Below are positions 5,721-50,690 of a DNA stretch of 64,000 bases, one piece after another (the stretch's first letter is position 1; every line of letters begins with the position of its first letter). The stretch is from Podarcis melisellensis (taxonomy: Eukaryota), in the NCBI GenBank assembly GCA_964234715.1, contig OZ174285.1. One strand, given 5' to 3'. Made by a program: the position numbers and the translations under genes. The notes beneath the pieces are model-generated. The model was given only the letters and a program-made list of their open reading frames with translations, did not search any database and was not told the origin of the DNA.

Positions 5721-5794
5721 ACATCCCTGAAGAGGAAGCCAAATACTGGACTCAGAAGTTAAAGCAGATAAACTCCTTGGAGGAAGATGAGGAG
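5721..5794 (+). CDS. UNC13B: UNC13B coding exon: DIPEEEAKYWTQKLKQINSLEEDEE (helix following C2A)
   Basis: Acceptor tcttgcag| and donor |gtgggt. 74 nt, phase 1 to phase 0. Confidence 0.95.
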
Positions 5795-7210: not shown

Positions 7211-7268
7211 CATTCCTTTGCGGAAGAGGTCCAGAAGCAGCCGCTGCCCACTGCTGCCTCCCAGTGTT
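7211..7268 (+). CDS. UNC13B: UNC13B coding exon: HSFAEEVQKQPLPTAASQC
   Basis: Long pyrimidine tract with ttag| acceptor, donor |gtaagt. 58 nt, phase 0 to phase 1. PLPTAAxQC is the Munc13-2 linker motif. Confidence 0.93.
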
Positions 7269-9124
7269 GTAAGTGAGAAATGTTCAGTCGCTTCGTATTT
7301 CCGTCCTTCAGCAGGTTGTCGTGCTTTGCTTTCTTTCTGCAGTAGAACAAAGTGTGTTTGCTGAGCTGTCAGTACTTCAGAACCCTGGCAGTAAGGATCC
7401 CTGTGCCAGCCCTGTCTGTCTGGGTCTCTCTTGGTCCTTGCATTCAGACATGGTGTTCGCCTGTCCTTCGTTCTGTGGTTTGGAGAGTGCCATGTCTTTG
7501 GGTTCAAGGGGGCCTGTGGGGCCGAGGCAGAAGCCTCCCTTGCCAAGCCCTTTCTTGGCCTTGCAAGTCTGGTCAGGCTTGAAGCCTCTGCTGGCCACTG
7601 CAGGGCCCCCCTGTGTCGCATGGCAATGGGAGCCGAAGTGGGCTGCCTCCAAGAACGGCCGCTCTCTTGCTCAAAAAACGGGACCCCTTGGGCCAGGTGT
7701 CTTTCAGTGTGTGGACAAGACTGAGTTTTCTGGTGGAAATGGGAGCATAACATCCAAAATAAATAACCACCTTCTGCATGCAAAGCGGGAAGCGTTCTAG
7801 GGGCCTTGATTCTGCATCAGCAAAAGTGGCCGGGTTCATGCTTCTCTGTAGCCCAGCATGGAATAAACGATGGTTTGCCATGACTGAGAACCCATGCTCA
7901 GCCCTGCCTGCTTCACTCTGCCCCCAACTGGAGCGCAGAAGCGAGGCCGCCTGTCTTACCATTGATGTGTGAAGCAGCACTTGCGGGATATTTTCCTCCA
8001 AATCACAACTGTAAGCCAAGCTTTGCTTGCTGCTCATTTGAGATAAGCCGCCGTTTGTTTCTAGCTGTGGGTCACTGTCAGATGCTTCCATTGTCAAATC
8101 TGGAGCTCCAGGTGTCAACGACGGCTCCTTCTGTAGGCCAGGGTGCCCCTATTCCCAGCCCCTCCCCATGCCCTGGGGAGATGTGGGGCTGGGGGGATCT
8201 CAGCTGCAACTCCTGCCAAGAGCTGCAACTCCTGCCAAGTGGTGCTGATATTTGGATGCAGGGCGTAGGAAGGGGCGAGGGCAGTTTTGTTAAACGCTAG
8301 CAAAGAAAACGGAACAGATCCAGCTTTCTCTTGCTAAGTGGTGTGCCAATCTCCAAGGCTTTGCATATCTGAACTGCTCTCCTCCTTTGAAACCTGGTAA
8401 GACTTGGTATTCAGAGTATTACATGTTGCCGGTTGCTTATCCACTAGGCTGATTAGAGGCTCTCTTCAAGAAGGTTAACATTAGGAATTGTTAATTACCC
8501 TGTTGCTGGACAAGCAAATTAAATATCTAGTAGCTTAATTACTTTTCTAATATCACTGAGTGGCATTGTATAAACTCATTATTCAAGTATTTATTAAATT
8601 TTTATACCACTTAATAGGAATGAAAAATTCTAAGTTGTTTACATAGAAACTTTACAAAAGCAAGTATTTGTGTGGGGAGACCCCCCCCCCTTTAACTGAC
8701 TTGGATTGCACAGGATTTGGAGAAGGACATTGACTTAATTGCATATTAAAGCCCATGTGTGACTGAGCAGAAGAGACAAAGGGCTTGCAGTTCACTGCAT
8801 TAGTGCAACTGAGCTGCACAGCTCTAAGCCCTGCAGGGCTGGAGATCATCCTCACTAGGCCTAAGGATGGCAAGCGGGCACAGGACCAAGCTTCGCAGCT
8901 CATTACAAAGGCCCATCCAGTTGTGCGCCGGGCTCTCCGCCGCCGCCGCGAAAGGCCGGCATGATGGAACAGGGAGTCGGGGGAGATGCCTTGCCCTTCA
9001 GCTGTGGTTGACTGCAACTTCCATCATTCCTTGGCTGAGACTGATGGAGAAGCCCAGACTAAGAGGGGTGTATGTCTTTTAGTTGCTTTATATTAAAAGC
9101 CATGGTCACAAAATGTTCCCTATA

Positions 9125-19394: not shown

Positions 19395-21856
19395 GTATGT
19401 AACACTTTAATAATAATTTCTTTCTAGTTCTCCGGTTCAGAATTGCTTCCCCATGCTCCAGGCTGAGGATATCTCGGGTATTCATGCACAAGAGTGAAAT
19501 GCAATCGACCTTCTGCTATTTTTTACTTTGTTGAATTCTGTTATTGTGTGTGCCCATCCTACCATGCCTCTCCCTTGCAATGTGAACTAATGAATGGTAC
19601 CTTAGAATAGGGATGTTCTCTTGCCTGGTGCCTTTGTGGGCCATGGGGTGTCCCCGATAACCAGCAACACAGCAGCTGCTATGGGTCTGAGAAGCAGAAG
19701 CTGCTCTGTTGCTTTTGTTCCCAATTGCGAAAAACAAAAATGACTATTGAGCATAATATGACAGGCTGCTAATCCACCAGGAAAGGTCTAGAGTGTTTCC
19801 TGTTTCTCAGGATCAGGAAAACTGCTGCTCTCCACCCTGGGGGACCTGGACTCTGCTCTGGACCTCCTTCATGTGTCCAGTGTTTGTATGCATTTCTCCT
19901 TCTGTTTGTCATGTGCCCCTCCTCATTAACTCTAGACCCCTATCCCCCCCCTTTTCAGATAGATAAGACACCTGTCCATGTTGCAAATTTTTGGTGAAGC
20001 TTCAGTTTCCCAGTGTTGCCCAATTGCACCATGAAGAGTGTCTGGGGCCAGGGTTGGGGGGGACGAAGCTTTGCTTTCTTGCCCTGACACCTTCCTCCGA
20101 GTAGGAACTTGTGCCTTTCCCACCAGATGGGTCTGCAAATGCCAGGGTGGGGGGAGGAAGCCAGCAGGCTCAGCCTTCCCTGCCTCCCGCTTGCTCTTTT
20201 GAAAGTCAGATCGGTGTGTGGCATTCGCCAAAGTGACAGGCATACCCTCCTCCTACCCGTATACCTTGCAGAGCAGTGAGAGGTTTTCACAAAGAATAAC
20301 AATCTCGCAGTCGAGGAGTCCCCCCCCCCCCCGAGATCACATAATCCCAACCTCGCCCTCTGGGCTGATTAACTCGGTGCCGTGGGCAGATTGTGGAGGC
20401 CACTCTGATGCGAAGCCCTGTGAGTGGTGACATTTGCCGGTGCTGAGGAGCCTGTGCCTGTCTCCTCTACACTGCCTGGCACCGGTGTCCCCATTAATAC
20501 AGACCGTTGGCCCTTTGGGAGTTTCCCGAGGAACCTGCTCTGCTGAGTTGAGGAGGATTAATTCTCTAACAGGTTGTTGTCAACTGGTGATCTCAAAGCA
20601 AGAGGCTTGCGGAGTTGAAACCTCCCCTTGCCAGGTGTGTGCACCTTGGGGGTCCCGGGTGGCACGAGGCTTGGCCAGTGGGCCTCTTCTGCGCAAGGCT
20701 TTAATGCAGGGTGTGCCCATCTGCACCTTCGCTTTTGTTTCTGCCCTTCTCTTCCACCCTCTGGGATCAGAAGTGCCCCTGCTTGCGGGAGAGAAGGCAG
20801 CGGAGCCCCAGCAGTGTCCGTGATGGGAGAGGATGCCCCCATCTTCCTCTCTGGCAGCAACAGACCCCTCTCCGCTGCCAAGCGTGGGGTGCAGAGCCAC
20901 TCTGTTCATCTCCCCGGGGAGCAGCAGGGAAGCAAAGCATTCGGAGGTGCTGTGAGTTTAGCGTTGGTTCCCTGGAGCTGCTGGGGATTTCTCCCAGCTA
21001 GTGTTTCCTCAGTACAATGGGGGGACATGTGCAAAATGTAGCCTCTGTCGCTGCAGAGCAGATTTCCCCCCAAGTGGTGGCAGCAGCAGCAGCAGCAGTG
21101 GGAAGGTACAGGGCTGGCTGCTTCTGTTTTTCCAACAAACATCAGATGAGGAATGGGCAAGCCCTCTATTTCTGGGTAAGCTCTTATCTTTTTTGACAGG
21201 ATCTACTTTTGTGGACTGCCACGTTGAGACAAGGCTTTTGGCGTGGAGTCGCACTCATCTTGAATGCCTGCTGTTCTCTTGTGGAAGAGAAGATGCTTAA
21301 AACTCACATTCACACTGCAGCTCTCCCACTCATCCCACCTTGACATTCAGTTGCCTGGATTTCAGGAGGGAATTTTTTTAAAAAGAAAACCTTTCTTAAA
21401 GGCTAATGGGGGAGTAATTAGGTTTTCAGTCTCCTTTTCCATGTGAAAGGCAGCCTTCCCTTGCTTTGGAGAGAAGCAGTGGGAGAAGACGTAAATGTCT
21501 GGCCATAGAATTCTCACAAACCCTTTAACAACAACAACAACAACAACAACTACAATAATAATATAAATAAATAAATAGGGCAGTCATAGCCAGAGACCCA
21601 CCCTCTCTTTTCACTCAGCGCCTTTTGCCCTTTTAATATGAGCAGAAGACTGTCTTTCCACGTAAACCTTTTAAAGATCTCGCTGCATTGTGCCTCTGTG
21701 TTGTGAAATGTGTTTCAAAGATTTGTTGTTCATGAGACATTTGGACCTTTTAAAGAGAAGATGTTCCACCAGCCCCTCTCACAAGAAGTGCTGTTCCAGT
21801 GCTTGCTGGCAAGGTTCCAGGATCAATAAACTGTTGGACTGTAGAAAAGCTTGCAT

Positions 21857-21896
<40 letters not shown>
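21857..21896. repeat. (CA)n microsatellite
   Basis: About 20 CA units. Confidence 0.95.
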
Positions 21897-25117: not shown

Positions 25118-25340
25118 CTTTTGAAGACCACGATAGTGCTGTGGATGACAGAGACAGCGACTACCGCAGCGAGACCAGCAACAGCATTCCTCCCCAGTAC
25201 CACACCACCTTGCAGCCCAATGCTTCGGTGCACCAGTTCCCCGTGGCTTCCCGCCTGCAGCAGCAGGGGGTCCCCCGAGAGTGCTGTGTGGAGTCCCTGC
25301 ACGGCTATGATTTGGATTACCACGAACGAGCAGCCATCAG
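25118..25340 (+). CDS. UNC13B: UNC13B coding exon: [30 protein letters not shown]...[11 protein letters not shown]
   Basis: Acceptor ctgtcttctag| and donor |gtaggt. 223 nt, phase 1 to phase 2. [18 protein letters not shown] is diagnostic for Munc13-1/ubMunc13-2. Confidence 0.96.
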
Positions 25341-26664
25341 GTAGGTACCCCCTTGGAACCAGGGCGTTTTCTTCCCCCAACCACAAATTTATTGGCAGGA
25401 GAAACTCACCGTAAGCTACCAAGACTGGGGCTGGCTGCTTCAGACTATCTTGTGGTCAGGTTCTTAAAAGAAAAGCCATTCTGCTGCTTCAGGGGTGACA
25501 GAAGAGCAGTGAGCAACAGCTGCCAGACACGGGTCCCCCCCCCAGAATAGCCCAATGGGAGCAAAGAGAGCTTTGCAGTTGAGCCTCCTCCTTGCGAAGC
25601 AGAGCTGGTGGTAAGCAGTTCTTTTTGCTGTGGAATTTTGGGATCCCCAGGTTGTCGCCCTGAGTGACCAAGAGTGACTGACGATATGTGGATCAATTTC
25701 ACTTGAGATTGCAAGTCGTGCTGACCCTCAGGATGCCCCTCTTGCTGAGATTTGGCTTCCGTTGCCTCGCACCCATCCAGACTCCTGGCATGATTGCGCA
25801 ACCACCAGTCCCACACGCCACACACTTGCTTTCACTTTCCATTTTACGATACTAAGCTGTTTGAACCTTCTGTGTTGCTCTTGTCCTTCACGTCTCCCAA
25901 CGTCTCCTTGCCTTTTTGAAGAAGGCGCCATAGCTTAGACTCCACTGTGAGTGGCCGAACTGACCTGGAATCTGCATCACAGTCAAGTCAAATGACAAGC
26001 CGCCAGCTGTCATTAGAGAGCCGCCACTCACTAGAGGTGTCTGATAGGTGGGTGACCCTCTCCGAAGCCTCTGTGTCCGTGTCTCGTGACGTGGCTTTGG
26101 TCTGCTGGGGTTCCTGGGCTGGCTATCAGTGTTTGCATGAATACATCCTCTTCCAGGCATAGTTGCCGGCTGGCTGTTTTCTGTTGCTTCTCTTGTTTCA
26201 ACTGGGTTTTTGTTTCTCTTGAACATTTGTACCAGCCCTCTAAAGAGAGAACTGATGCAAATCATTACCTTTCCTCCATACTAGGCCTTTAGAACCTTAG
26301 ATCTATCTAATTTATCCTCATATAATTACTTTGGTTTCTAATTGTCCTGTCAATACTGTAGCTGGAGTTTTTAGGATTCATGTTTTCAACTCTGACTTGC
26401 CCATCATATCTTGTTTGTGCTGTCCACATGGTTAATGGAAGTAACCCCAAATAATAATTGGAACAGTTCCTCATTTTGCGCCTTATCAACATGATTGTTG
26501 TTTTTAATTTATTTACCTCTAGCGATAAACCACAAGTAAGATAATGGGTTTTTCCTGTTTTGTTGTTTTGTCACATTGCAAATTTAATTAATTGATGCAC
26601 TTTATTGTGTGCTTAGTGTAATAACTTATTATTAGTCTGTTGCAAATGCCCCTTCTTAAAATCA

Positions 26665-26975
26665 GGAGGTAAGAGTCCTGCTGGATCAGGCCAGTGGCCC
26701 TCCTTCTCCAGCATCCTGTTCTTACAGAGACTGACCAGATGCCTGGGAGAAGCTCAGAAGGAGGACCTGAGCTCCAGAGCCCTCCTCTCCTCTCCTCTCC
26801 TCTCCTGCAGTTTCCAGCAACTGGGGCTCAGAAGCATCTCTGCCTGTGACCGCGGAGGCAGAGCAGAGCCATCATGGCTAGTAGACTTTGATAGCCCTTC
26901 TCCCCCATGGATTTGTCTAATCCTCTCTTAATCCAAGTTGGTGGCCATCATTGCTTTCTGTGGGATAAACTCCGT
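26665..26975 (-). mobile_element. CR1-family LINE 3' end fragment
   Basis: Reverse strand of a squamate CR1 3' UTR (ctgctggatcaggccagtggccc...ccagcatcctgttc...gttggtggccatca). Similar to 58150-58339. Confidence 0.65.
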
Positions 26976-27384
26976 TGAGACGCTCCAGAAAGTGACTTGT
27001 AACATTTTAGGTAGCTGCTCATTGACATTTTTAATCCGCAATTCCTGTTCTTAACAAAAGCTTATAAATAACATACCATACATCACTTGATAGTATACAT
27101 AACACTGGTATACATGTTTCGTTCTCTCCTACCCCTACAACCCTACTATTTAGCTGCTGCAGTAATAATAAAAGAGAGATTCCTAACTTTTCATGTTAAT
27201 AAATGGATTCATTGTTATGATATTTTAATATAGTTTTTGCATGTGATTCACGATATCATTTGGTCTTTATGAAATGCTCCTTTGCAAGTTTTGTGTTTAA
27301 AGCTCTTTTTTCACCCCTCCTGCTCTTTCCTTTTTTTCTTTGCCCTTCTGTCCTTCTTATATTTTCCCCCTCCACACATATCAG

Positions 27385-30300
27385 ACCAGGATCTTTAGTT
27401 AGCAATGGGAAAGTCAGGATCATTCCATTTGATTACGAAGTTGGCCAAGAACAGGAAGAGTGTGAAGAGAACTATGAGGAATTAGGCAAACAGTTAATAG
27501 AAGATTTTTTAGAAAAAAGTCACAGGACTAGAAGTTCACAGGGACGAAGGAGCCCGAGACTCTCGAAAAGGGAGAACTTTGGCCATCCTGAAAGAGGAAG
27601 ATACTCACGGAAGGCTTGCCCAGAATCGGGAAATCCCGATGTTCCTTGCTATCCAGAGGAATATGACACAATAGACAGGAGAAGAAAGAAGAAGCTGCGA
27701 TATAACAATTTTGAAGAATGCGACCGAACTATATTGCAAAGCAGTGGTAACCGGAAATTTTCATCAGGCAGCATTAAAGCAAGAACTGAACATAACCTAT
27801 ATCCTGATTATGATGAAACTGAGAAATGGGGCAGCAGCCCCATTGAAAGTGAAGAACAGTTACCGGAATATCCAGTTCTGCGTCCATACAAGAATGGCCT
27901 TCTAGTCAAGAGTGGCAAGTTGTCCGCTAACCAACGTGCAAAGCATGACTTGGGATCAGTCCATTTTGATGGTGAAAATGAGATCCATTCAGAACAGCCA
28001 GCTCACTCTTTTGTGCCATTGGGTGCCCTTAAAGAGTTTGGCAGCTGTTCGTCCAGTGTACTCCTGTACTCCCCAGTTTCGGATGATGATGATGATGAAA
28101 TGGAAGAAATAGCAATACTTTCCCAAGCATGGCGTGAATCCAGTGTTCGCCATGTTGGAGACCTTACTGACGCCCGTACTGGAAGTGCCATATCCCTGTT
28201 ACCAAGGGACAAAAACTCACATAGGATGAGAGGAGGAAAGCACGGCTTTCTTAAGCAAGACTTGACCCTCTCTCCTGTTGAAGAGCCAACGGAAGAATAC
28301 GTGGACACAATGGATGAACTGCAGTGCTTAGTTGAAACTGTGTCTGAATACTTAGCTGAAAAAGAGGAGGAGATTAGCAAATTTGAAACCCTTCCTGCGA
28401 GCAAAAACGCAAGCGATTGTGCCTCTCCCAAACTGGCCGGTGCTGATAAGTTGGCGGAGGAAAGTGCCCCTTTGGAGCAGGCAAAGCCAGCCGCTTCTGC
28501 CACAGAGGAGAGCGAGGGCAGCAAAGGCATAACAGAGGCATTGCCAGACTTGTCTGGGGTGAAGAACACGGTCAGCTCCTTGTTTAGTTCTTTCACTGAA
28601 AAGGTGGGCTCAGGAACAAAGCACTTAACAGCCTCAGTTGAAAAACTTGTATCCCCCACACCAGAGAAATCTGAAGCCCCTGGTCAACCTGAGGGAGGCA
28701 TCACAAGTCTGTTTTCAAGTAAGCCTAAGTCTGAGGGTGCCTCTCCAGAACTGAAAGCAGAAAACAAATTGGATGCCAAGCTGTCCACTGCAACTTCTCC
28801 TTCTGTGACCCAGAGCAGCCGTGAGCGAGAAGCCGGTGATGCCAAGGCCAGCATCCCAGAAAAGACAACAGGAGATGACAAGGCTCCTCCAAGTGTCCAG
28901 GATGCTTCAGCAAACGCTGCTCCGCCCCCTTCCCTGGACCCCAGCTCAGTCGTGAACTCCGTCTTAGGCATCTTCAACCCTTTGAAAATCTTCTCCGAAA
29001 AGGAAGCACTGAAAAAAGAGACTGCAAAACAGGAGGAGGCTGTGAAGGTGGAAGCCACGCATGCCAGTGCTTCTGAAGCCAAGGCAAGTGCAAAGGCAGC
29101 TGAAGGCAACGCGACAAAACCCACCAACATTGCGCCTCCCGAAACGAGCAAGAGCGAGGCAGAAGCGAGCGCAAGCAGCGGCCCCGTCTCCTCCATCTTT
29201 GGCAAGCTGTCGAGCTCCATTAGTTCTTTTAGCTTGAAAGCCAGTTTTGAGAGTTTGGCTGTTCCCAAGCAGCCAAGTGGGCCGCAGAAGGCTCCTGATG
29301 CGCCGCCGCAGGCCACAAGTCAGCCAGATAAAGTTGTTAAAGAACACCCAGACATGCCAAGAAATCCACAACCTGCAGGGAAAGTGCCAGAAAACAAGCC
29401 AAGTGAAGCCAAGAAGGAGGCTGGTACCGCTCCGCCGTTGGAGCAGGGGGAACCATCTGAGAGCTTTTTCAGTCCACTTAAGAAATCCTTCAGCCAGATG
29501 CTGCTCCCTTCTTCTGCTACCGAAACTGTGCCAAAGGAGCCACCACCGGGCTTGGGGAAAAGTCACCGTTCTGAAGATGATGTCAGGAAAACGAGCTCCG
29601 CAAGCAGCGAACCCAATTTCCCTTTCACCGGTAAACTCCAGATTCCCTTTTTGAGCGGTTTTGGCTTTTCAGACAAACCACCGCAGGACAACAAAGAGAA
29701 GCCAGGAATTTTCACTTCCTTCTTGAAAGCTGCTTCTGTGGAAAACCTGACAGCTTCAAAAGATCAAACTGCCCCACCAAGTTTTAGTGGCAAGCCACCA
29801 AAGGCTGAAGAGGGTCACAAAAGCAGCAACGCGGAAGCTGCCAAAACAGAGTCGTCAAAGTCTCAGGCAGTTCCCGAGGCACCGCAGAGAAAAGAGGAGC
29901 CGGCGAGGAAGAAAGAAACCAGTAAAGAAGATGGTCTGGGTGCACCAAAAAGTGGAGATAAAAAGCAGGGTGCCTCAGACACTTCAAGAATTGCGCACAT
30001 GGATCATGATACCAAAGGCATGGGTGCTCTGGACCACAAAGATTCCAAATGCAGGGGGGAGCTGGCAGCCCCCACAAAAGAACCTGACTTAAATACGACA
30101 GCAGGAAAGCCAGTGCTTCCTGGTGGAATCAGAGAGGACCAGGCAATGGATGATACGCCGAATAAGGCCCCACAGCCAGGGCAGGGGTTGCTCTCGGGCC
30201 TCTTCCGGCGGCCGTCTTCAGACCACATAACCCACAGCGAAGAGTCGAATGCTAAAAATGAAACGGACAGCCAGAAGAGCAGATCAGCTGGCTTACTTTC

Positions 30301-33300
30301 TGGATTATTTAGGTTTGCTTCAAGTGAAAACCTGACCGAAAGTATGCCAGATAAGGCAAAATCAGGCTCTCTGGGCATAATGAAGTTTTTTGAGAGGAGC
30401 GAAGAGCCTAGTTCTGGTGACAAGTCCGTTGGCTCACATGTGACTCCCGGTCCCCAAGAAAGCACTGGGGGGAAACCGGAGACAGGCAGCTTCATAAAGA
30501 ACTTCATGCAGAGGCCAAAAGAAAAAGTGGAGGAGGCAGTGACCGAGACTGCGAAGGCGAATGGTCATTTGCCTCACCCAGAACTGAGCAAGATGGAGAA
30601 CGGACATGGTGTCGTCCCTTGGCATCCCCCCTCTCAGAATGCTTTAAGCTCACAGCCAAAGATACAAGACTTATCGGGGCAGCGAACTCTTTATAGACAA
30701 CCTATGGATTCCAATATTTATCAAGCAGTTCTCAACGAAAGGTCAAATGAATTTCTCAATTCCTCTTTGCTGAATGCTAAATTGCGTGGCCACTCAGAGC
30801 AGCATCTTGCTCTTGAGGAAACAAGGAGCAGCCCCTCTAGCTTTGACTGGGAATATGATGCAGGAGCATTTTCTCTTAACGCCCACCAGGTTTCCTTGCC
30901 AGTTTACTACGTCTTGCAGCAGAATTCTGTCCCACTGGCTGAGTTTCTGGAATGGCCAGACTCCAGTGACGCTGCAGTGAACTTGTGTAAAAAAGATGGC
31001 AATGCCAATGTCGTGGATTGGAGGTCAAATGCAAATTTTGATGCTCTGAGCATGGATTTCAGTGTCATGTCCCACGAATCGTTTGATCAGTTAGACTTAC
31101 AAGATTTAGGTCTAGAAGAAACTGAAATGTGGACAACGCATTCTCTGAATGGAAACTTTCCTCCATTTGATGACTGCAGCTATATTTTGGAAGAGATGCC
31201 CATGGACTTAAGCTATTCGTCAGCATGTGATGGCAATATGTGGACCTTAATTGATCAGGAGTCCTTGAGCCTGGATGGCAGTTTTGTCTATTCATCTTAT
31301 AGCCAGGAGTACCAGGACTGGCTGACGCTGCTTGAGAAGGGCGTGTGGTGGCCATCGGAAGATGGCGATTGTGGATATTACATGTACAGGGACGGTCAGT
31401 TTGTTTATTCTCTGCTCACCGACCCCACTGGGCAGTATGTCTACATTTGCACTCCTGACACTTACACCTACCCAGACTACTGGGATTATAATTATCCGCA
31501 GAGCATTTTGCAGAGCTCTGTCTTGGAAGATGACATGATTGCCGTTTGCGGTTTCAAAGTGCCTCTTGGTAATGAAGACGAGTTATTCTGGTTTGCTGAA
31601 GAGGAGCAATTGGATAATTACTCTGTAAACAAACCACTTGATTTGTCTGTAGCTCTGCAGAGAAGTGATCAACTTATGAACATGAATTTAGAGACCTTTT
31701 CGCAGATGTTTGAGGAGTCCATTTATTACCAGAGAGAGCAGCCTTTAGACTTTTCAGGGTACAAACTTCAAAAACTCAAAGTAGACTTTAGGCCTGAGAA
31801 TGACATGGAGTGGCGCTCAGAAGAGCCTCCCCTGACCCTTGACCTTAGAGTTCACTCCAGGGTGGCTTCCAGCGGGAGGCTAAAAGATGATGCTCTACCC
31901 AAACATCTGGACAGGACTCCTGCTGTGACAGTTTCCGAAAGTGCACAGTCAAGACGGTTTGGTTTCCATATATTCCAGTCTTCTGCCAAGCCGGAGCCTT
32001 CATCGGCGTCTCAGAGTGTTACAGAAGTCAAAACCACTGAAGAAGATAAAAAGCCACCTCTGAATAAAGTTGCATCTTTATTCTCTGCTTTGGGTGGCCT
32101 GATGGGTAAGGGTTTGGAAGCACATGAGACAGTGGAAGACGCGGCTGTGAAGAAAGGAGAACCGGTGGTGTTGGGACACAAAAACGATGCTCTTCCAGCT
32201 ACGCCACCCAGGAAAACAGGAGAGGATATCCAGCAGCATACTGAGCATGAACAAGAGAGAAATGAGAGAGGCAGATTAGTTAAGTCTGTTAGGGATGAAA
32301 AGCCAGTGATTTCTCAGAAAAAGCCTCAGCTAGTGAGGTCTTCCTCTCAGCTCAGCCAGGGTCCCGTGGACAGCAAGACCAGTCAGCTGGATCAAAGTGT
32401 TAAGCCTGCTCCCCTCCCAAGTCAACAGAAACCCAAAGTGGGTGTGGATGAACCCAAGAAAACCCAGCCAGCCCCCAGCCAAGCGCCCACAGAGGCTGAG
32501 GGCACGTTGTTTAAAAGTGCTCTCAAGATTCTCAGCCTGGGAGAAGACTCCTCCACAACTGCAGCACCCAATAAAAGTCAAGGCCCCGGGTTCTTTGATT
32601 TCTTTAAAACGCAGGTCAACAAAGCCCCACAGCCACCACCAGCACCCCAACCAAATCTGCCGAAAAATGAAGCCGAGAAGAAAATGCCTCAGGAGAAAGT
32701 GGAGCCCCCAGGCATTTCATCATTCTTTGGTTCCATAGGGGATCTTTTCAAAGTCGATGCCGCCCCTGCCCCACCAAGTGCCGCTGCTCCACCAAAGAGT
32801 GGAACCCACACCTCCCTGAAACCGAATGACAACGCAGACCAGCGTAGCAGAGAGCCAAGTAAGAGCAGCGCTCCTGCTCCTCAAATCCCCGTGGAGCAGG
32901 CTCGTGGGGAAGCTGCCCAGAAGCCCGCAGTCCCTAAGGAAGAACAGCATGGGAAAGTAAGCAAGGAAACTGCTCCAGCGAAGAAGGAGGACATCCCCAC
33001 TGCAGGGAATGCAGAACCCAAGCCTCCCGTGCAGGCAGGCCCTCGAATGGACCAAGCAAATCGCTCTCCAGGGCAGCATGGCCACGGACCAGCTGTTGCA
33101 CCGGGACCGCAAGGCCATGCAGGAGCCATACCTGGTAAAACTCAGCCAGGAAAAGCCAGTCAGCCACCCAGGGAGTCTGGGTTTAGCCTGCCTTTTGGCT
33201 TGTCGCAGGCAGCACCTTCTAAGCCTCCGCAGGCACCACAGCCGGCTGGCAAGAGCATCTTCTCCTCCTTCTTTGGTGCCCCAGAGAAAGCCCCTGCCCC

Positions 33301-36229
33301 AGCTCCAGCAGCTCCTAATGCCAAGCCCCCGGAAGCAGAGGGTCTGTTCAAGATGCCTTCTTTCTTTTCTGGAGGGCCCACCGCAAAGAAGAACATGCCT
33401 CAGAGCAGCTCCAGCTTCAGCTTTTTCAACCTGACCTCCTTCCTGGATGACAAACCACCAGCAGCTGCTCCTGACAAGGGGAATATTGCAAAGCCACCTC
33501 AGCAGCAAGCAAGCAACCTGGGAAGGCCGCCTCAACAGCAAGCAGACGCAAAGCCATCTATGAAGCAGTGTGTTTCTGTTGACTCTGGCATTGGACTTGC
33601 CAGACAGCAGGGCTTGAAGGATAAAGAGGCAGCGGAGGGTGTTATAGAAGCAGTACTTGGAAAGCAAGAGGCTGTTGGCCCGGAGCACAAGGCAAGTGAG
33701 TTAAAAACTCCTGCGGCTGAGCATGCTGCGGCAAGTGCTTCAGAAGTAAAAAATGAGGTAGAGATACCTTTTGTGGCCAGTAAACCTCCTGATGATGGTA
33801 CAGATAGAGAAGACCACTCAGTCTATCCTGATCCTGGCTCTCAGGTCCCTACGCTGCAGGAAGACATTGCACCTTCCCTTCCGGAGATTCCACAACCAGA
33901 GGAGCAGCTGCAAGACAATGCAGAAAAGAGTGGTGGTATTGTGGTGTCCTCTGAGAAGGAATTTGTTCCTTTAGTTGGGAACGAGACTTTTGAAAAGGCA
34001 GAGCCCGGTCCAGTTTGTGATGAGACCTCTGTGGCTCTTGAGCCATCTCTTGCTCCTGGAGACCTTTCACAGGAGGTTGTACCTGAAGAAAAACCAAGCG
34101 CCCCTGAAGTCAAGCCCCCGGAGCCCAAGCAACCTGATAGGACCCCAAATACTGCAGGAGAGCAGCAGGCTCAGGGCCAGAGGCCTCTCCCTCAAATGGC
34201 AGCAGCAACACCTAACCTGCAGGAGAAACCTAAAGAACCTGAGGCTGACAAATCAGTTCTAGATTCCTCAGTTGAAATGTTTTCCAGCTTCATGACGAAG
34301 ATGAAACCAACCAAAACATTATCTGGCTTCTTTTCCCAGCCTCAGACTCCAGCAGCTCCTAGTGCCCAAAAGAAGAGCACTTCGTTTTTCGGCCTTTCCT
34401 CCCTGCCCACTGGGCCTCCTCCAGCATTCACAAGTGATCTCTTTGGCATTTTTAAAGGAGCAGCAGATGAGACCCTTTCAAAGCCTGCAGGGAAGACCGC
34501 AGGCACTTCAAAAGCCCAGGAAATGAGCTCCAGGGCAAAGGAGGCTGTGGGCCCAGTTCTTGGTAAAGGTCTCGCAAAACAAGATAAAGCCTCTAGGGAT
34601 CAACTTTTAGGGACAAATGCCGGCAGCGTTTTGAAACAACCCGACCAAACCTCTAGGGCTGAACCTACAGAGAAAGAAGCTAGCAGTGACTTGAAACAAG
34701 ATGCCTCTTCTGCTTTAGCAGGTGAGAGTTTGGGGAAAGAATGTAGGGCAGAATTGGAAGCTGAAAGCAGTGGAAGACCTGAACATGGTCTGGAACCCTC
34801 CCTGAATGCTTCAGAAACTTTAGACTCAAGTAGGGATCAGGGCCCTGAAGTGGTACAGCTGGACACAAACTTACTGGCATCTGATGAAGCAGGGAAGGCT
34901 GCCCCGTATAGTCAAGAGGTACATGATGCAGCTGAGACGGTGGTGCTGCAGGAGAAGAGTGAAGTGCCTGTGGAGCCCTTAGAAAATGATGCTGTCCCTG
35001 CTGTTGAAGAAGAGCAAGTGAGCCCAGCAGGAGAAACAGACGTTGGCCAAATGGATTTGGACAGTACACATGAGCTGGAACCCAAGGTTGGTGAGGAAGA
35101 GGAACACCTGAAACTGCCAGAACTGACGGATACTTCACTAACCACTGAAGAAGTAACTATAAAGAATGAGGCAGATATTGATATTTGCCCACCAGACACG
35201 TTTGAGACCCTGGAGATGGAACCCAAAGCTGCTGCAGATGAGGCCCATGACTTGCCCCATCAGGATATAGAAAAGGTCCCTGAAATAAAATCTGATCTTC
35301 CTCCTGAGCAGAAGGAGCCTCTAACCATCAGCGAAGCAGCCCCAGAAGCTGCTCCCTTGAAAAGCAGTTTGGCTGGTAAGAGCAAGCCAGCCAGTGCTCC
35401 TGCAGAGGCCAGCAGCACCAAGCCCATGTTTGAAATTCCAAGCATGCCCACTTTGCCCAAATTCGGCTTCATGTCTTCTGCAGACAGCAGCAAGCCATTT
35501 GGCTCCTTCTTCTCTGCACAGCCGCCTTCGGCAAGCAAGCCTGCGCCTGAGCCAGGCCTCGTCTCCAGCTTCAACAAGTTTTCCTCAAGTCTGTTTGGTG
35601 GAGGAAGTGATGAGAAAGCAGGTAAAGTAGAGGGCACTCCGGGTGCTGTCTTTGGAAAGAAGCTGGACTTCTCATTTCCGTGGCAGAAAGATGCCAAGGA
35701 GGCAAGTCTCAAGAAGGAACCAGATGTGCCAACACCAAAAGCTCCCTCCAAACAGGAGGCGGCCCCAATTGCTTCATCCAAACTAGATTTGAAGGCACCA
35801 GAAGTTCTCTCGAAAGCCGAGGAACAAGCAGTGGATGTGGCCGGGGCTGACGGGAGCCCAAACCTCTCTGCCTCTGACCAGCCAGCCGACAGTGCTGCTG
35901 ACTCAGACCTTTCTTCTAAGCAGCCTGACAGCAAGAGCAACGAATGCTTCGATGGTCCCACACCTGACATTCCGCTTGCGCCCAGCAAGGAGCTGGAGCT
36001 TGAGGTCCCCAGAGAAACGGAAGATGAGCCAAGCACCATTTCCAGTGAGCCTCCTGGGCTCCCTTTGGAGGAACCAGCAGAAGGCGCCACACAGGTTCTG
36101 GATGAAGTAGAGCAGAAGGAAAGTGTCCCTTGTCCAGAAACGGAAACACTTGCCACTGGACTGCAGCCGGCGGAGCAGAGTAGCCCTGAGCCACTCAGGA
36201 AGAAAAGGCCAGTAGCCAAAACAGCATGA
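27385..36229 (+). CDS. UNC13B: UNC13B giant exon (~2,940 codons, mostly disordered). It ends either at a GC donor after 36207 (internal cassette) or at TGA 36227-36229 (terminal).
   Basis: Uninterrupted ORF 27260..36229. A long pyrimidine tract and tcag| acceptor at 27384 give phase 2, matching the upstream donor (AG|A = Arg). An 8.8 kb stop-free frame is not expected by chance. Confidence 0.92.
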
Positions 36230-36729
36230 TAAATGGTGCCAACTTGTGAGCCATTTATAATGCAAGTGCCGTAACAGTAGATGCCTGACCTCGTAGATCA
36301 GACTCCTCTAGGCTGTGTTTGGCATTAGTAGTACCCAGTGGTAGGTAGAGTTGTGAACACTAGTTGCTAGACTGCCCACCCAGCGCCTCTCTTGCCCTTC
36401 TCCTTCTCAACTTCTGGCTTCCTTTGTTCCAAAAGGCTGCGATGACTCTTCCCCTTTGCTCTCCTTTGTGCTGTGTCCTTGTGAGTGAGCTGCTTTGAGT
36501 ATTAGTTTCATTAACCTTCTGTAGCCTGATTGTGTGCGTGAGAAAACAACTTGCACCTCTAGATGACATGGTGGGAGGGAGGAAATTGGGGGCTCTCTTG
36601 GTTTGCAGAAAGCTTAGTTAGACAACATACAAGGCATTCACGTTTTAAGGTGGGAGAGAGACCCAGATGGCAGCAAAAGCTGTTTCAGTGGTTGCAGTTC
36701 AGTCACCTGCAGCATAACTTTTCTAACAC

Positions 36730-36937
36730 CCAGAAGGGGATTCTGACTAAACATCAGGAAAAACTGTTGAACAGACTCCCTAGGGAGTTGGTGGATTCTC
36801 CTTTCTTGGAGGTTTTTAAGCAGAGGTTGCCTGGCCATCTGTCATGGATTCTTGAGCTGTGATTCTTGCATTTAGGGGGTTGGACTGGATGACCCCTGGG
36901 AGTCCCTTCCAACTCTGCCATGCTAAGATTCTGTGAT
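36730..36937 (+). mobile_element. CR1 LINE 3' end fragment
   Basis: NRLPRELVDSPFLEVFKQRL C-terminus, followed by cccttccaac...gattctgtgatt. Confidence 0.8.
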
Positions 36938-38212
36938 TAAAGCCTCCTCCCTCCCACCAGGAGGAGTTAAACATGGCTGTTGACTATTAAAGGTACCAAT
37001 GCAGAAACATCTAGTTCTTGCTGCTCGGAAGCCGTTACTGCCCAGCTAACATGATTCAGTTTTTCTCTACTTTTACCAGCTGTATTCAGCGGCATTAGCT
37101 GAATGTGCTTTTCTGTGTTAGGCTGCAGGTCTCCAAGCAAGCTGATAACTGGTTTTCTGGTTTACCATATCTCAAAAACATGTTTTTTTAATTCCATATT
37201 GAAGAGAATTGCAGTGATTTCATGTTACAGCTATCAGTATATTAGTGACTTTTGCTCCCTGTTTACCCCTGTCCAGGGGATGATTGGGGCCGGTGTTCTT
37301 GCTGCCCCTCCCTAGTTACAGAACTGCTCGTCACTAAAATCATTGCTAAATCTGCACTCCTCACCCGCCACCTCTAGACAATTGGCCCAGCAGGGATCCT
37401 GCTTCAAGCATTTCCCTTTCTGCCCAGCCTGTTTTCCAAGGAATAGATGGGATTTTCGCAGTGTAGCTGCCTTGGGTCCTCTTGCAGCTGTCTCTGCCTA
37501 TGTGGGCTGCCAAAAGCCAGGCGGCACTTAAATAGCGGCCCAAAAGCATTTGTGCCCCTTCCCTCTTAGAATTCCACAATGGAGAGAGTGTGTGTGGGTG
37601 TCTTGTTGAATTAACTCCAACCTTATAATAATCAGTCACTCCCAAGCAGCAACAGCAATGGGCCCTTGTTGTGCTGGAAGAGAGGGCTGATTTTTCTAAA
37701 CGGCAGCTACAACAGGATCCATTCTCAGCCACTGGAGAAACTTAAGAATGTGTTAATGAAATGGGAGTGAAGATGAAACCCTCATGTCCTAGAATCCACG
37801 CGCAGTTGACATGCTAGGGGCAAACATTGTTGTAAGAAGGTGTTGAGCTTAGCAGCTTAGAAGTTCAATGTGCATGAAACTTTTGCTGCCATTCTTAATT
37901 TTCCTATGGCCTGTAAACAATTTACAGGATGCGCAGCAGATGATGCTATCTGTTTCTGATTGATATATCAATAGGGTCCAGAGGCTTAGGCCCAGCACAA
38001 AAATTGCAAACACAAATTTGGAAGTGGCGGGCGACTGAGAACAGTGGCTGCAATGTGCAAGAGACATTTGCTTGGCTAGAGTTTCCATTTGATGCTTTGG
38101 CCAGGTGTAGTTAGGATTTGCGCTCTCTCTCTCTCTCTGTGTGTGTGCATGCATTGTGCTGTTTCCTGGTTGCCAAGACCTTTTGACTTACTAATGCTTT
38201 GCTCTCTCACAG

Positions 38213-38509
38213 TCCTGCCAGCAGTAGTAAGTTTGGTTCCTCCTGTAACATCAGTCAGGGAAGCTCTCAGCTGAGTGAGCTGGACCAATATCACGGGAGT
38301 GTGCCCTGCTCCGAACACGAGGACGAGCTCACAGAAGGAGTGCCTGCTGCTGCTGCTCCTCACCCAACAGAGGGCCCTGCACCATCTAGTGAGCAGCACG
38401 AGCCCCAGGAAGTGCACAGGGAAGGAGAGGGGAAGGTGAAAGAACATGCCACACCTCAACTACCTCCTGAAGTGGACGAGCCCAAAGAAGCCACAAAGAC
38501 ACCGGGCAG
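38213..38509 (+). CDS. UNC13B: UNC13B coding exon: (S)[27 protein letters not shown]...KTPG
   Basis: Branch point tactaat, acceptor ctctctcacag|, donor |gtaggt. 297 nt, phase 2-2. [20 protein letters not shown] matches ubMunc13-2. Confidence 0.93.
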
Positions 38510-38965
38510 GTAGGTGGTGCACGTTGGCCATGGATTCCTTGGAGTTGAACTTGAGGCCACTTTTCTGGTAGATCTTGGGAGAGACAAACAGGATATGGGT
38601 GTAGTGCCATAGCTGGTTTTGAGTGCCCACTGCTGTCTAGGGTCAGAAAGGGGGGGGGGACAAACTTCATTAAATAAATCTTCATTAATCCTCTTCATCA
38701 TCATCATCATCATTTTACACCCATCCAGTGACTAATGGGGCGCATTCCTTACAGGGTTCTCTACCACAGTCCCTGTTGGCCACACTTTCTGTTCTTTCCA
38801 TGCCATTCTCTGTCTTTTGCTGGCCATCCCAGTTCTCTTGGGGCCAACTGTTCTCAGCGTTTGTTCCCACCATTACAATAAAAGGTTCTTTTCATGTGTT
38901 GAGTTTCATGAGACTGCTCTTGAGTTTCCAGCACTCATTTTCCCCTTGTTTTTCCTTTTTGCAAG

Positions 38966-39056
38966 TCACCTTGATGAAAATGAACTTCTCCTTCTTCCCG
39001 CTGCAAGAGCCCGCTGGATCCGAGCCATTACTAAAGTGCGGCTTCAGTTTGAAGAG
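38966..39056 (+). CDS. UNC13B: UNC13B exon with the ubMunc13-2 calmodulin-binding helix: (S)HLDENELLLLPAARARWIRAITKVRLQFEE
   Basis: Pyrimidine tract with gcaag| acceptor, donor |gtaggg. 91 nt, phase 2 to phase 0. ARAxWIRAxTKVRLQ is the Munc13-1/ubMunc13-2 CaM site. Confidence 0.94.
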
Positions 39057-42000
39057 GTAGGGCCCGCGAAATGTCTCTTCCCCCATCCTTCCACCCGTGT
39101 CTGCGCTTGTAAACCTTGCCGTGACTTTTGTCTGAAGGTTGCTTTGCTTGTCTAAGGGAGACACCATTCTGGGGCAACTGCACAAACGGTGCATGTGCCT
39201 CTCTGGTACCAACAACTTGCTGAAGTTGACTGTGGTGGGCTTAATTTGTTGACCCCATGGCAGAGGGGTGCAGAACTTGTGCCCCACCAGATTTTGTTGG
39301 ACTCTCTCCTCAGCCCCAACAGCCAACAGGGCTGGGATTGGGGCGAAGTTGGAGCTCAGCGACATCTTGGGGCACCAAGTTGGCTACCTGTGTTGTGTAG
39401 GAAAACCAGGATTATTTATGGAAGTGTTGCGTTGACACCACTGTTCCGTTGTGCCTGTAGTTTGTCTTCTGAGGCCCTTCTCTATGTTCCCTCTCCCCAA
39501 AAGGTTTGGAGGGTGACAACACAAGAAAGGGCCTTTTTAGTCGTGGGTCCCCCTCTGTGGAATGCTCTCCCCAGATACTTTCCCAACCCGTTGTGGGTGT
39601 GTGGGAGAGGAGACCCTTCCATGAACTACTGTGCTGCTCCTGGCTGCCTCCCGATTTCACCCCAGAGAGCACCCAGAAGCCGAGTGTTGTCTGAACAGGC
39701 CGGAGCAGAGAGTGGCAGCAGGTTCCCTCTCTGCGCCATGTTGGATGCTGCCCTGGCCAGCGGAAGGCCATTGATGTACCCCGGATCAAAATAGGCTCAT
39801 GTTTGCAACCTTGTCGTTATAGATGGATCAGAATTCACACAATGTCACTGGGCTCTTCCGAGGGTGGGCTTAGCACTGCAACTGTGTTGTTGAGGTATCA
39901 CAAAAGGGTCCTTAGCAGCAATGATATTTTTCATGGAAAGGGGAAATCTGAGCTAAATGTGGGGGAAATACAGGGTGGCAGTTTTAGGGGATTCTGCAAA
40001 ATAAGAGCATGCAAAAGGAGCAGCTATCTGACACTGATGTCAGGCTTTCTTAGCAGTTTCTCACGCAGGGCAGAAACTGTGTTTTGCTACACAGAGTATC
40101 AAAACACTTTTGTAATTCTTAAGCAGGTCAGCAGCCTGTTGAGTTGAATTAAAAGATCCTGACGGGTGTAAGAAATGTGAGATATTTTCAAAAAGCCGTC
40201 AACCCAAGAGCTTTAACAGAACAACCTGGCGAGTTTGTCTGTCTTCTGAAAAATGCTGCTTTGAATCATTTAGTGAATTGTTTTGAAAAGTAAAACTCTC
40301 AAGAGCGCTGAAGGCTTCTGCACACAAAGAGAATTGGTGGTGTGTGAACGACAAGCGGCTCCTGATGGCTGCAAGCAGACCCCTCCTGCCTTCACGTCCC
40401 CCCCTCCGTCTGCTTTCTTGTGGGGCAGAGAAACTGGCAGGATGCGCCGTGGAAAGCTTTTGCCACTGCAAGATGCTGCACTGGCGTTTCTCCAGAAGCA
40501 CCAAGGTTTTCTCTTGATGCATCTCCTGGGAGTGGGAGATAGGAGTACAAACTTGTCTGCTGTGAGCAGGAAGGTTCCTTGCGCGCCTGTCAAGATTGGT
40601 ACATTAACTCTTTTTCGTTATTCTGGCTTGTGCTTGTGTCGTGTTTCACTGTTCACGGAAGAGAGTTGTATTCAGTAGCATCAACAATAAGTTGGGTATC
40701 CCCCTTTGCATCTTCTATAACCTTTTTTGGAAACTCTTATAGTTGCAATACTCATCCTCAGTTGCACCCATTTCAGAGCTGTTCAGGATAGCAAACTATC
40801 GTCCCAACTGGAATTTGGTTCCAGTGGAAATAGCATTTTTCAATAATGGACCTGGTGGAGTAGGCTCCATTCCTGAAATCATTTGACCCAAACTGGAGCC
40901 TGGCAATTCAGTCATGCCCTCACACACGTGTGCAACCCACATGGTCCGAGTCATCAGGCAAATCAAAGGTTTGGAAGGTGGGTGCCCTCTTTCGCTTTGG
41001 GCGGAGTCTGACTCCCCTGTGTGGGACACTCTTTAAATGCAAAGGTGCACACTGGTTAAAGGGTGAATTTTCCACATTTTGGGGTTCTCCTCTGTTGCAA
41101 ATGAACCTTAACCAGTCCTGGATCAAATCGGGACTTGAAAGCTGTGAACGTTTGGCTGAAATCTTAATCCTTTCACACCAGATACGCTTGGAGTTCAGGC
41201 AAGCAAGCCAGACTGAATTTTGCTCTGCTGCGTTTGTCAGCAGCTGGTACCGCAGCTGTTGTGTGTGGAAAGCAAAACGGAGAAGGAGAGCCTTGTGTGT
41301 CTTGTAGATTTAAGTACTATGAAGCGAAAGACTGGTCAGAGACACCTGTCTGTCTTGGAGTTGCAGGTTCCTGTGCGGGGCTACTGGTGTGGAAACATTA
41401 CATCTGGGGTGCAAAATAATAAATATGTTTCACATAGCGTAGAAAAGACTATACATATGTAGTATTATTCTAAAAGTGTCATGTGGCATATACTTTTGAC
41501 TTCCCTTTAAAAAAGCTGTTTACATTTCCATAAGAGATTATAGTCCTTTTTGTGTGTGTGTGTGTGGGGGGGGGGGTATTTACACGCATTAACTCCTGGC
41601 GTAGTAGCTTGAATATTGGCAAAGTCTGCATGTTGTCCTTAATAAAGTTTTTGACACTTATATCCAGGTTGATGAATATTCATAGGGCTTTCTGGGTAAA
41701 TTGAAAGTGAATCCATCTGGAATGAGAGTCAGGAGAGAATTATATGTCAATAGCCAGGCTTATTAAATTGATACAAATGAATGTGTCTTACCTTCTTGTT
41801 GTTGGCAAAGGAGGACCATTTTGGAAATCCTTGTAATGTTACGTGGAGGTAGCAATGGGTATTCTCTGAGGAACTGATGGGGATCTTCTGATCTGGATTG
41901 CAGTGAGGGGCCAGGTCACATTTTACTAGAAGTTGCAGAAGGGGAGCTGCAAGTGCCCCCTTGGATTTGCAGAGGGCTCCTTCCCTAGAAACCCTCCCGT

Positions 42001-50490: not shown

Positions 50491-50690
50491 NNNNNNNNNN
50501 NNNNNNNNNNNNNNNNNNNNNNNNNNNNNNNNNNNNNNNNNNNNNNNNNNNNNNNNNNNNNNNNNNNNNNNNNNNNNNNNNNNNNNNNNNNNNNNNNNNN
50601 NNNNNNNNNNNNNNNNNNNNNNNNNNNNNNNNNNNNNNNNNNNNNNNNNNNNNNNNNNNNNNNNNNNNNNNNNNNNNNNNNNNNNNNNNN
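50491..50690. other. Assembly gap (200 N)
   Basis: Run of N. Confidence 1.

Follow-up and report, generated by a model that had tools for sequence, protein, structure and literature searches.

Munc13 proteins are essential vesicle-priming factors, and binding of their C2A domains to RIM is established. For ankyrin-G and ankyrin-B, a large, vertebrate-conserved and largely disordered alternative exon (480- and 440-kDa forms) is known to produce a long scaffold with a distinct role. Here we describe a giant exon of UNC13B, the gene encoding Munc13-2, in a window of 64,000 nucleotides (nt) from Podarcis melisellensis (contig OZ174285.1, assembly GCA_964234715.1); the window is the whole stretch of DNA analysed, and all positions refer to it. 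Among the described systems, Piccolino appears to be the closest in design to the protein arm encoded by this exon. Piccolino arises when splicing does not take place after a very large exon, which leads to early termination and loss of C-terminal domains (PMC3735604). It carries multiple spaced PXDLS motifs that bind the B domain of RIBEYE (bioRxiv 10.64898/2026.04.28.721253; PMC10760060) and a motif of the amphipathic lipid packing sensor (ALPS) type that binds liposomes resembling vesicles and tethers vesicles to ribbons (PMC13394108). Canonical ubMunc13-2 has been treated as a globular protein of ~180 kDa (PMC9286502) and has 1,593 residues in the gene call of Zootoca vivipara. With a probability of roughly 0.6, we explain the giant exon as an ancient composite exon of the ubMunc13-2 (ub) transcript that has two alternative 3′ fates and would encode a multivalent tether or adaptor arm.

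On paper, the Munc13-2 arm has all three hallmarks of Piccolino, namely a read-through stop, PxDL(S/T) motifs and ALPS-like motifs. An earlier note, made from the sequence alone, had called the protein Piccolo-like, but no sequence relation to Piccolo or Bassoon was found: Pfam assigned 0 families to the 2,947-residue exon translation, and the named matches of a profile search were all of the UNC13B type. The resemblance would thus be functional rather than one of homology, with Piccolino a closer parallel than Piccolo. The two designs also differ in their anchor (RIM-binding C2A in Munc13-2, zinc fingers in Piccolino), in the number of amphipathic motifs (~22 versus one described ALPS motif) and in the number of PxDL(S/T) motifs (three versus seven). 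With the ankyrins, UNC13B shares the principle that one very large alternative exon makes a known protein a long scaffold. However, the ankyrin giant exons are pure cassettes, whereas the UNC13B exon is apparently composite, its GC donor being conserved and lying next to a stop. Its conserved units are short linear motifs, in contrast to long repeats, and a search for tandem repeats gave none. Compared to canonical ubMunc13-2, the giant forms come from the same gene, promoter side and C2A exons, and the giant exon falls into the linker between C2A and the calmodulin (CaM) site. The canonical mRNA joins 25340 straight to 38213 and encodes ~1,600 residues, whereas the giant forms would reach ~350 kDa (without the MUN domain) or ~500 kDa. 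The existence of the exon is not new, as gene models are public, but no paper describing it was found in the literature, and Unc13b is absent from the main text of PMC4991804. The statement in the earlier note on very long UNC13B models lacking a functional description holds on both counts, with models of 4.1–4.55k residues in many vertebrates and no functional description of the long isoform found in the literature.

The stop-free frame at 27260–36229 on the plus strand comprises 2,989 codons and is by far the longest open reading frame (ORF) of the region; by our own arithmetic, the chance that 2,989 random codons lack a stop is ~(61/64)^2989, or ~1e-62. According to tblastn of orthologous proteins, the ORF listing and translations, the giant exon lies on the UNC13B strand between the C2A-side exons and the exon carrying the ARARWIRAITKVRLQFEE stretch, which we take from established knowledge of ubMunc13-2 to be the CaM site. 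The upstream exon ends with two bases of a codon (..AG) and the next exon opens with one, so the giant exon must start with one base and end with two (1+3n+2). Only one 3′ end fits this phase, AAAAG/GCCAGT (a slash marks the splice site), with its GC dinucleotide at 36208–36209, and the fitting 5′ end is cag/A at 27384/27385, preceded by a long polypyrimidine tract. The resulting series of splice signals (..ATC AG/gt; cag/A..; ..AAA AG/gc; cag/T..) is compatible with the frames of both neighbouring exons, and the models Zootoca X1 and Ictidomys X7 read ..ERAAI-RPGSLVSNGK.., i.e., they use the same acceptor. A GT donor at 36212 (CCA/GTAGCC) was dropped, because it breaks the frame with the exon at 38213, whereas the GC at 36208 is phase-correct. 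If the GC donor is not used, seven further codons (RPVAKTA) follow before TGA TAA. These data bear out the ~2,940 stop-free codons in one exon and the insertion between C2A and the CaM site that had been noticed before, the flanking exons now being mapped by orthologues. Of the limits 27385–36229 given at that time, the start stands; the cassette ends at 36207, and 36229 is the end of the TGA reached without donor use. As a separate observation, an internal alternative acceptor lies at 27640–27652, 88 codons into the exon and just before YP(E/Q)EYDTIDRRRKKK. It has AG in turtle, pigeon and Tasmanian devil (L003, L005, L006) and is used by Terrapene and pilot-whale models; the window and Zootoca read ..ccttgc/TAT at this site, without AG.

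In total, 255 relatives were found, in lizards, snakes, turtles, birds, marsupials, placentals and axolotl. The orthologues are annotated in UNC13B, with dozens of models named ‘protein unc-13 homolog B isoform X..’ of 3.0–4.55k residues. One kind of predicted model is full-length UNC13B of 4.1–4.55k residues with C2, C1 and MUN domains; another, which includes Zootoca isoform X1, consists of C2A plus the exon and ends at the read-through stop after 3.0–3.3k residues; and a third contains the exon alone and is named ‘uncharacterized LOC’. A profile search with the central region of the exon against 1.84e9 representative proteins found 68. All ten matches whose names were checked were UNC13B or unnamed giant models, with sturgeon, bowfin, catshark and teleost unc13bb among them, in models that reach 6,041 residues. 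No other gene family appeared among the named matches. Because catshark, sturgeon, bowfin and teleost models were retrieved, the exon is, judged by these homologs, older than the split between cartilaginous and bony vertebrates and about as old as the jawed vertebrates. Five unnamed intact ORFs of 2,770–2,779 residues (P0121, P0222, P0223, P0226, P0228) were 78–79% identical to the hamster exon and probably belong to further muroid rodents; among the relatives listed, none of the giant models was named as mouse or rat.

The comparison with Zootoca vivipara (locus L001; 91% protein identity and 5.6% DNA divergence) gave a nonsynonymous substitution rate (dN) of 0.041 and a synonymous rate (dS) of 0.122, i.e., dN/dS = 0.334 (bootstrap 0.28–0.40). 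The ratio was 0.09 in 810 deeply conserved codons and 0.52 in 1,199 poorly conserved linker codons. The Zootoca alignment contained no stops, and all eight indels in the 8.8-kb exon were multiples of 3, whereas 22 indels in 2.5 kb of flanking intron mostly were not. In a third species, represented by the RNA runs described below, the exon had two indels of 3 nt each (33300–36207), indels of 1, 2 and 18 nt occurred just past it, and 16 of the first 40 substitutions were synonymous. dN/dS and ORF integrity had been proposed earlier as a check on the exon; neither a disrupted frame nor neutral evolution was found in the close relative. Gene structure, conservation and selection together show a genuine, ancient and optional coding exon of UNC13B that has two possible 3′ fates.

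The 3′ end of the exon has an unusual arrangement. At the DNA level, the GC donor AAAAG/GC and an in-frame stop 4–6 codons past it were present in 7/7 species (window, Zootoca, painted turtle, Nicobar pigeon, Tasmanian devil, camel and sterlet), and in 4/7 (sterlet, turtle, pigeon and Tasmanian devil) the sequence TAA TAA spells AATAAA. KRPV-type C-termini end the exon models of shark, bowfin, salamander, marsupials and placentals. The sequence behind the donor is conserved as well, with the pattern ..GCAT[A/G/C]ATAAATGGT..CCATTTATAATGCAA..AGTAGAT and invariant CCATTTAT and ATGCA runs. Exons that can be either internal or terminal typically show a weak donor next to a conserved stop, here joined in most lineages by a candidate poly(A) signal, and from these alignments we regard the giant exon as a probable composite exon of this kind; a truncated or a full-length giant isoform could consequently be made. 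The C2-only models of guinea pig and hamster (P0211, P0229) do not have the stop that normally follows KRPVLN, and their translation runs on into the downstream block (..SSIINGFKKLTIYD..), so the block is conserved as DNA or RNA even where it is coding. It also contains UAG-bearing stretches, CCAGUAGCC at the donor and GCAGUAGAU ~75 nt downstream. In mouse, Unc13b is reported to have a photoreceptor-specific, MSI1-dependent alternative exon, whose identity is not stated in the source (PMC7948980); a link between the UAG stretches and that exon is only a guess.

RNA evidence came from small assemblies of one study on a close relative; none of the runs listed was registered as RNA. The contigs of three runs (X1–X3) and of a DNA control (X15) were mapped on positions 33300–39200. 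Four small assemblies of the study contained 0.30–0.33 of the 31-mers of the exon, which equals full coverage at the measured divergence of 3.4%. Spliced UNC13B mRNA was present in X1–X3, in which the joint of 38213–38509 to 38966–39056 (reported as 38507 to 38964, with the cut at +2) had GT..AG borders and a depth of 213–321; the joint was absent in the DNA run X15. The loose-end letters before 38210 in the X1–X3 contigs correspond to the end of the exon at 25120–25340. This end abuts 38213 directly, so the giant exon is skipped in the dominant mRNA, and most UNC13B mRNA in the lizard lineage looks to be of this form. The giant exon itself was covered in X1–X3 by contigs of 3–5.6 kb at a depth of 8–25. 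In all three runs, the exon-bearing contigs passed the donor unbroken and reached 36500–36818, extending at least 270–590 nt beyond the GATAAA hexamer that follows the stop in the window; they suggest that read-through RNA is the main exon-bearing RNA in the lizard lineage. The arrangement recalls the secreted/membrane switch of immunoglobulin mu, where a weak 5′ splice site is likewise followed by a stop and a poly(A) signal and sets a choice between truncated and full-length protein, but differs from it in the GATAAA hexamer of the window and in the RNA contigs that continue past it. In X2 the exon was present while the intron 36953–38239 was uncovered, and the 456-nt intron 38510–38965 was uncovered in X1–X3. 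Such holes are no proof, but the pattern mildly favours specific coverage of the exon. Downstream of the exon, an interspersed repeat at 36649–37042, whose word depth in each of the four runs lies between hundreds and hundreds of thousands, breaks the RNA contigs. Two ATTAAA hexamers within this repeat (36936 and 36986) could represent a distal poly(A) site.

The arm encoded by the exon has 2,941 residues (~324 kDa), is strongly acidic with a net charge of -139, and is rich in P, A, S, E, K and Q as previously described (S 11.8, P 10.2, E 9.9, A 9.2, K 8.0 and Q 5.0%). About 70% of its 50-residue windows were on the disordered side of the charge-hydropathy line, the disorder check suggested in the earlier note, and the arm looks mostly disordered by this prediction. 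Pfam gave no match for the four longest minus-strand ORFs, and no Rfam family was found. Conservation along the exon was strongly bimodal (17 tetrapods, Zootoca excluded), and 30-residue stretches are invariant across >400 million years (My). Both peptides that had earlier been singled out as ordered islands occur in the exon; no other stretch of it is as well conserved as the second, MDELQCLVETVSEYLAEKEEEI, whereas the first is only moderately conserved (0.58). An invariant acidic amphipathic helix, EEYVDTMDELQCLVETVSEYLAEKEEEISK, has a core that is identical in sturgeon and teleosts, and AlphaFold2 (AF2) predicted it as a helix with a predicted local distance difference test score (pLDDT) of 85–97. 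PDB and Atlas searches with this helix gave no relatives. For MDELQCLVETVSEYLAEK, an AKAP-like RII-binding helix was considered and rejected, as one position of the consensus does not agree and PDB and Atlas held no relatives; it is a weak lead at most.

The most abundant conserved elements of the arm are Phe/Ser/Gly-rich short motifs. In the exon, 22 such clusters were counted compared to 9.5 ± 2.5 in 500 shuffles. Mean identity was 0.60 within these motifs and 0.32 elsewhere, and Phe was the best conserved residue type (0.67). As ALPS criterion we used an amphipathic helix of 18–40 residues with a Ser/Thr/Gly-rich polar face, few charges and bulky hydrophobics, applied with thresholds of our own and not with a published predictor; by these thresholds the exon motifs have ALPS-type sequences. 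A strict scan returned five ALPS-like 18-mers versus 0.2 in shuffles. The best conserved motif, DLSGVKNTVSSLFSSFTEKVGSGTKHLTASVEKLV (with ..GVKNTVSSLFSSFTEKVGSGTKHLTASVEKLV), is a predicted Ser/Thr/Gly-rich amphipathic helix, for which AF2 gave helices with a pLDDT of ~55–60.

The central aromatic region contains three PxDL(S/T)-type motifs. All three are conserved in the fishes catshark and bowfin and two in sturgeon, and the spacing between motifs 2 and 3 is 36 residues from shark to mammals and 35 in axolotl. Pipefish (syngnathids) and stickleback have PVDLT/PVDFT, a concerted S-to-T change that stays inside the PXDL[ST] consensus. The motifs are thus conserved and lie in a stretch that appears accessible and unstructured, with an AF2 pLDDT of 29. 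A new folded domain in this aromatic island was considered and dropped in view of the pLDDT and of a PDB profile search that found nothing. For the same two reasons we read the region as a motif-bearing segment, which probably becomes ordered upon binding, and not as a domain. Together with the Phe/Ser/Gly array, the aromatic region with its three motifs forms the most informative part of the exon, which the earlier note had missed.

Based on these features, inclusion of the exon would place the arm directly after the RIM-binding C2A region. If the GC donor is used, the arm would be in frame before the CaM site and the C1, C2B, MUN and C2C domains, giving a protein of ~4,500 residues and ~500 kDa. 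If the donor is not used, the protein would end at a stop seven codons further on (..KK-RPVAKTA-stop) and consist of C2A and the arm only, with ~3,200 residues, ~350 kDa and none of the priming domains. C2A would anchor either protein to RIM at the release site, the ~22 Phe/Ser/Gly amphipathic motifs might bind highly curved vesicle membranes with low affinity but high avidity, the three PxDL(S/T)-type motifs might dock CtBP1 or the RIBEYE B domain, and the invariant acidic helix might bind a further partner. According to our own polymer-scaling estimate, the arm could have a contour length of ~1 µm and form a coil of tens of nm, and vesicles could be captured via many weak contacts. Without MUN, such a protein might tether vesicles without priming them, and competition with priming-competent Munc13 for RIM could follow. 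A multivalent scaffold or tether is the reading that we infer as the best one for the sequence. We consider the truncated isoform (C2A plus arm, without C1, MUN, C2B and C2C) at least as likely as the full-length giant protein, because the contigs cross the donor, a 36207–38213 joint was not seen, and a weak GC donor is combined with a conserved stop.

Several points weigh against the explanation as a composite exon with two 3′ fates. No joint of 36207 to 38213 was among the rows listed for X1–X3 on 33300–39200, beyond which lie 243 loose-end rows. As the mapping was confined to the 3′ side, the joint of 25340 to 27385 was not seen directly, and the junctions come from predicted models of other species. 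The intron 36953–38239 was covered in X1 and X3 at exon-like depth (~15), and a single contig runs across the next acceptor without being spliced. Some or all of the coverage of the exon could therefore stem from unspliced pre-mRNA or from DNA carried over. Furthermore, the contigs carry no information on RNA ends, levels or tissue. At the poly(A) signal, the post-stop hexamer is GATAAA in the window and lacertids (CATAAA in camel) and the contigs run beyond it, and conservation of KRPV could partly result from the donor sequence instead of selection on a C-terminus. As to the arm, the ALPS-like helices have low confidence in AF2, and with a 19-sequence alignment the aromatic region gave no confident fold.

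A competing view is that full-length giant Munc13-2, with ~4,500 residues, is what functions in the cell, as a priming-competent Munc13 that carries a long tether through use of the GC donor, and that read-through RNA is only an unspliced precursor. The length of the exon is an exact multiple of 3 and its phase fits both neighbours, the donor-like AAAAG/GCCAGT has been kept for >400 My, full-length models that include C2, C1 and MUN are known from Anolis, Varanus, Terrapene, many birds and many mammals, and the intron coverage in X1 and X3 at exon-like depth fits a precursor. Nevertheless, neither the 36207–38213 joint nor a loose end at the donor was among the listed rows, and the contigs of three runs cross the donor. 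All lineages checked have an in-frame stop 4–6 codons past the donor, and 4/7 have AATAAA; the giant model of the closest relative, Zootoca, terminates at the read-through stop, and birds, lizards, snakes and rodents repeatedly have giant models with C2 only. We therefore consider a purely full-length function unlikely, while giving it real weight. The giant full-length protein postulated in the earlier note agrees with the phase and the conserved donor, but is at odds with a main mRNA that skips the exon, with exon contigs that cross the donor and with the lack of the 36207–38213 joint among the listed rows. A separate gene nested in the UNC13B intron, which would have a promoter and a start codon of its own and be no part of Munc13-2, would explain why many annotations give the exon alone (2,700–2,950 residues), and the upstream junction was outside the mapped range 33300–39200. 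Yet the exon-only models begin at non-homologous Met codons, several of them within the polypyrimidine tract or the exon, and the open frame extends across a canonical acceptor whose phase matches that of the upstream exon. Moreover, C2A is joined to the exon in models of Zootoca, Pogona, zebra finch, guinea pig, hamster, squirrel and others, and the upstream sequence has no CpG-rich or promoter-like composition (GC content 0.42 at 26–28 kb), which makes a nested gene highly improbable. A chance or decaying frame that is visible merely as intronic pre-mRNA would agree with the skipping of the exon by the main mRNA and with a Zootoca DNA divergence that, at 5.6%, is just under the 6.3–6.7% of introns. 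It is refuted by the conservation data, i.e., a frame that is intact from shark to mammals, a dN/dS of 0.33 overall and 0.09 in the islands, indels that are all 3n and the stretches that stayed invariant for >400 My, apart from the ~1e-62 probability of such a frame, and we assign it almost no probability.

Returning to the composite exon, a more far-reaching proposal is that the read-through product is a conserved, RIM-anchored, priming-domain-free giant Munc13-2, a ‘Piccolino of the Munc13 family’, that serves as a second RIBEYE/CtBP-docking vesicle tether at sensory ribbon and perhaps other synapses via its three PxDL(S/T) motifs of fixed spacing and its ~22 ALPS-like motifs. We put this forward as speculative and rather doubtful. 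If true, such a protein could account for the ubMunc13-2 immunoreactivity at photoreceptor active zones, which was obtained with an antibody against aa 182–408 (PMC9286502), a region that straddles the insertion point of the giant exon. By the title of Cooper et al. (2012), as cited in PMC9286502, vesicle priming in photoreceptors is Munc13-independent. More generally, UNC13B seems to contain a selected, apparently undescribed module of 2,941 residues that is able to end the protein before its priming domains, so that current models may lack a major product of a well-studied synaptic gene. Its motifs suggest a concrete role that can be tested, keeping vesicles close to release sites, possibly those of ribbon synapses, and the module would offer a second natural example of the Piccolino design. 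For the interpretation of disease variants, ~8.8 kb of coding sequence is ignored when the canonical transcript alone is used. The features of the locus are compiled in Table 1.

Table 1. Exons, 3′ elements and protein motifs of the UNC13B giant-exon region (positions in the window; aa, residues of the exon translation; a slash marks a splice site).
Feature	Position	Strand	Remarks
ubMunc13-2 C2A-side exons	150-251, ~1600-1717, 2861-2986, 5720-5794, 7211-7285, 25120-25340	+	orthologue mapping
Last ubMunc13-2-specific exon upstream of the giant exon	25120..25340	+	ends ..GCC ATC AG/gtaggt, two codon bases left; tblastn and sequence
Small optional exon (SGRTDLESASQSSQMTSRQLSLESRHSLEVSDR, donor ATAG/gtgggt)	~25950-26050	+	matches residues 261-308 of golden eagle isoform X10
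Giant cassette exon	27385..36207	+	8,823 nt = 2,941 codons; cag/A acceptor, AAAAG/GCCAGT GC donor; phase fits both neighbours
Dispersed Phe/Ser/Gly-rich short motifs (~22)	28007..35677	+	spaced by poorly conserved P/A/E/K/S/Q linkers
Invariant acidic amphipathic helix EEYVDTMDELQCLVETVSEYLAEKEEEISK	28292..28381 (aa 303-332)	+	mean identity 0.90 in 17 tetrapod species
Best conserved ALPS-like amphipathic motif DLSGVKNTVSSLFSSFTEKVGSGTKHLTASVEKLV	28547..28651 (aa 388-422)	+	identity 0.85; strict scan passed
Central aromatic conserved region	30668..31840 (aa 1095-1485)	+	WWPSEDGDxGYY..TGQYVY core and three PxDL(S/T)-type motifs
PMDLS	31199-31213	+	exact PXDLS; invariant in 19 tetrapods
PLDLS	31634-31648	+	exact PXDLS; invariant in 19 tetrapods
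PLDFS	31742-31756	+	one-residue variant of PXDLS; invariant in 19 tetrapods
Read-through tail	36208..36232	+	(R)PVAKTA, then TGA TAA (36227-36232); C-terminus if the GC donor is unused
Conserved non-coding block	36208..36300	+	~85 nt past the donor, sturgeon to mammals (alignment A3)
Next constitutive exon	38213..38509	+	opens with 1 base; spliced to 38966 in RNA contigs
Exon encoding ..ARARWIRAITKVRLQFEE, presumed ubMunc13-2 calmodulin-binding stretch	38966..39056	+	translation; joint in RNA contigs

Outside the giant exon, the small optional exon at ~25950–26050 follows the last ub-specific exon and precedes the giant exon. The long intron contains a (CA)n/(TG)n microsatellite at 21840–21880, which shows up as HTHTHT/CVCVCV in the ORF listing, and a run of N at 50491–50690 represents an assembly gap or a mask.

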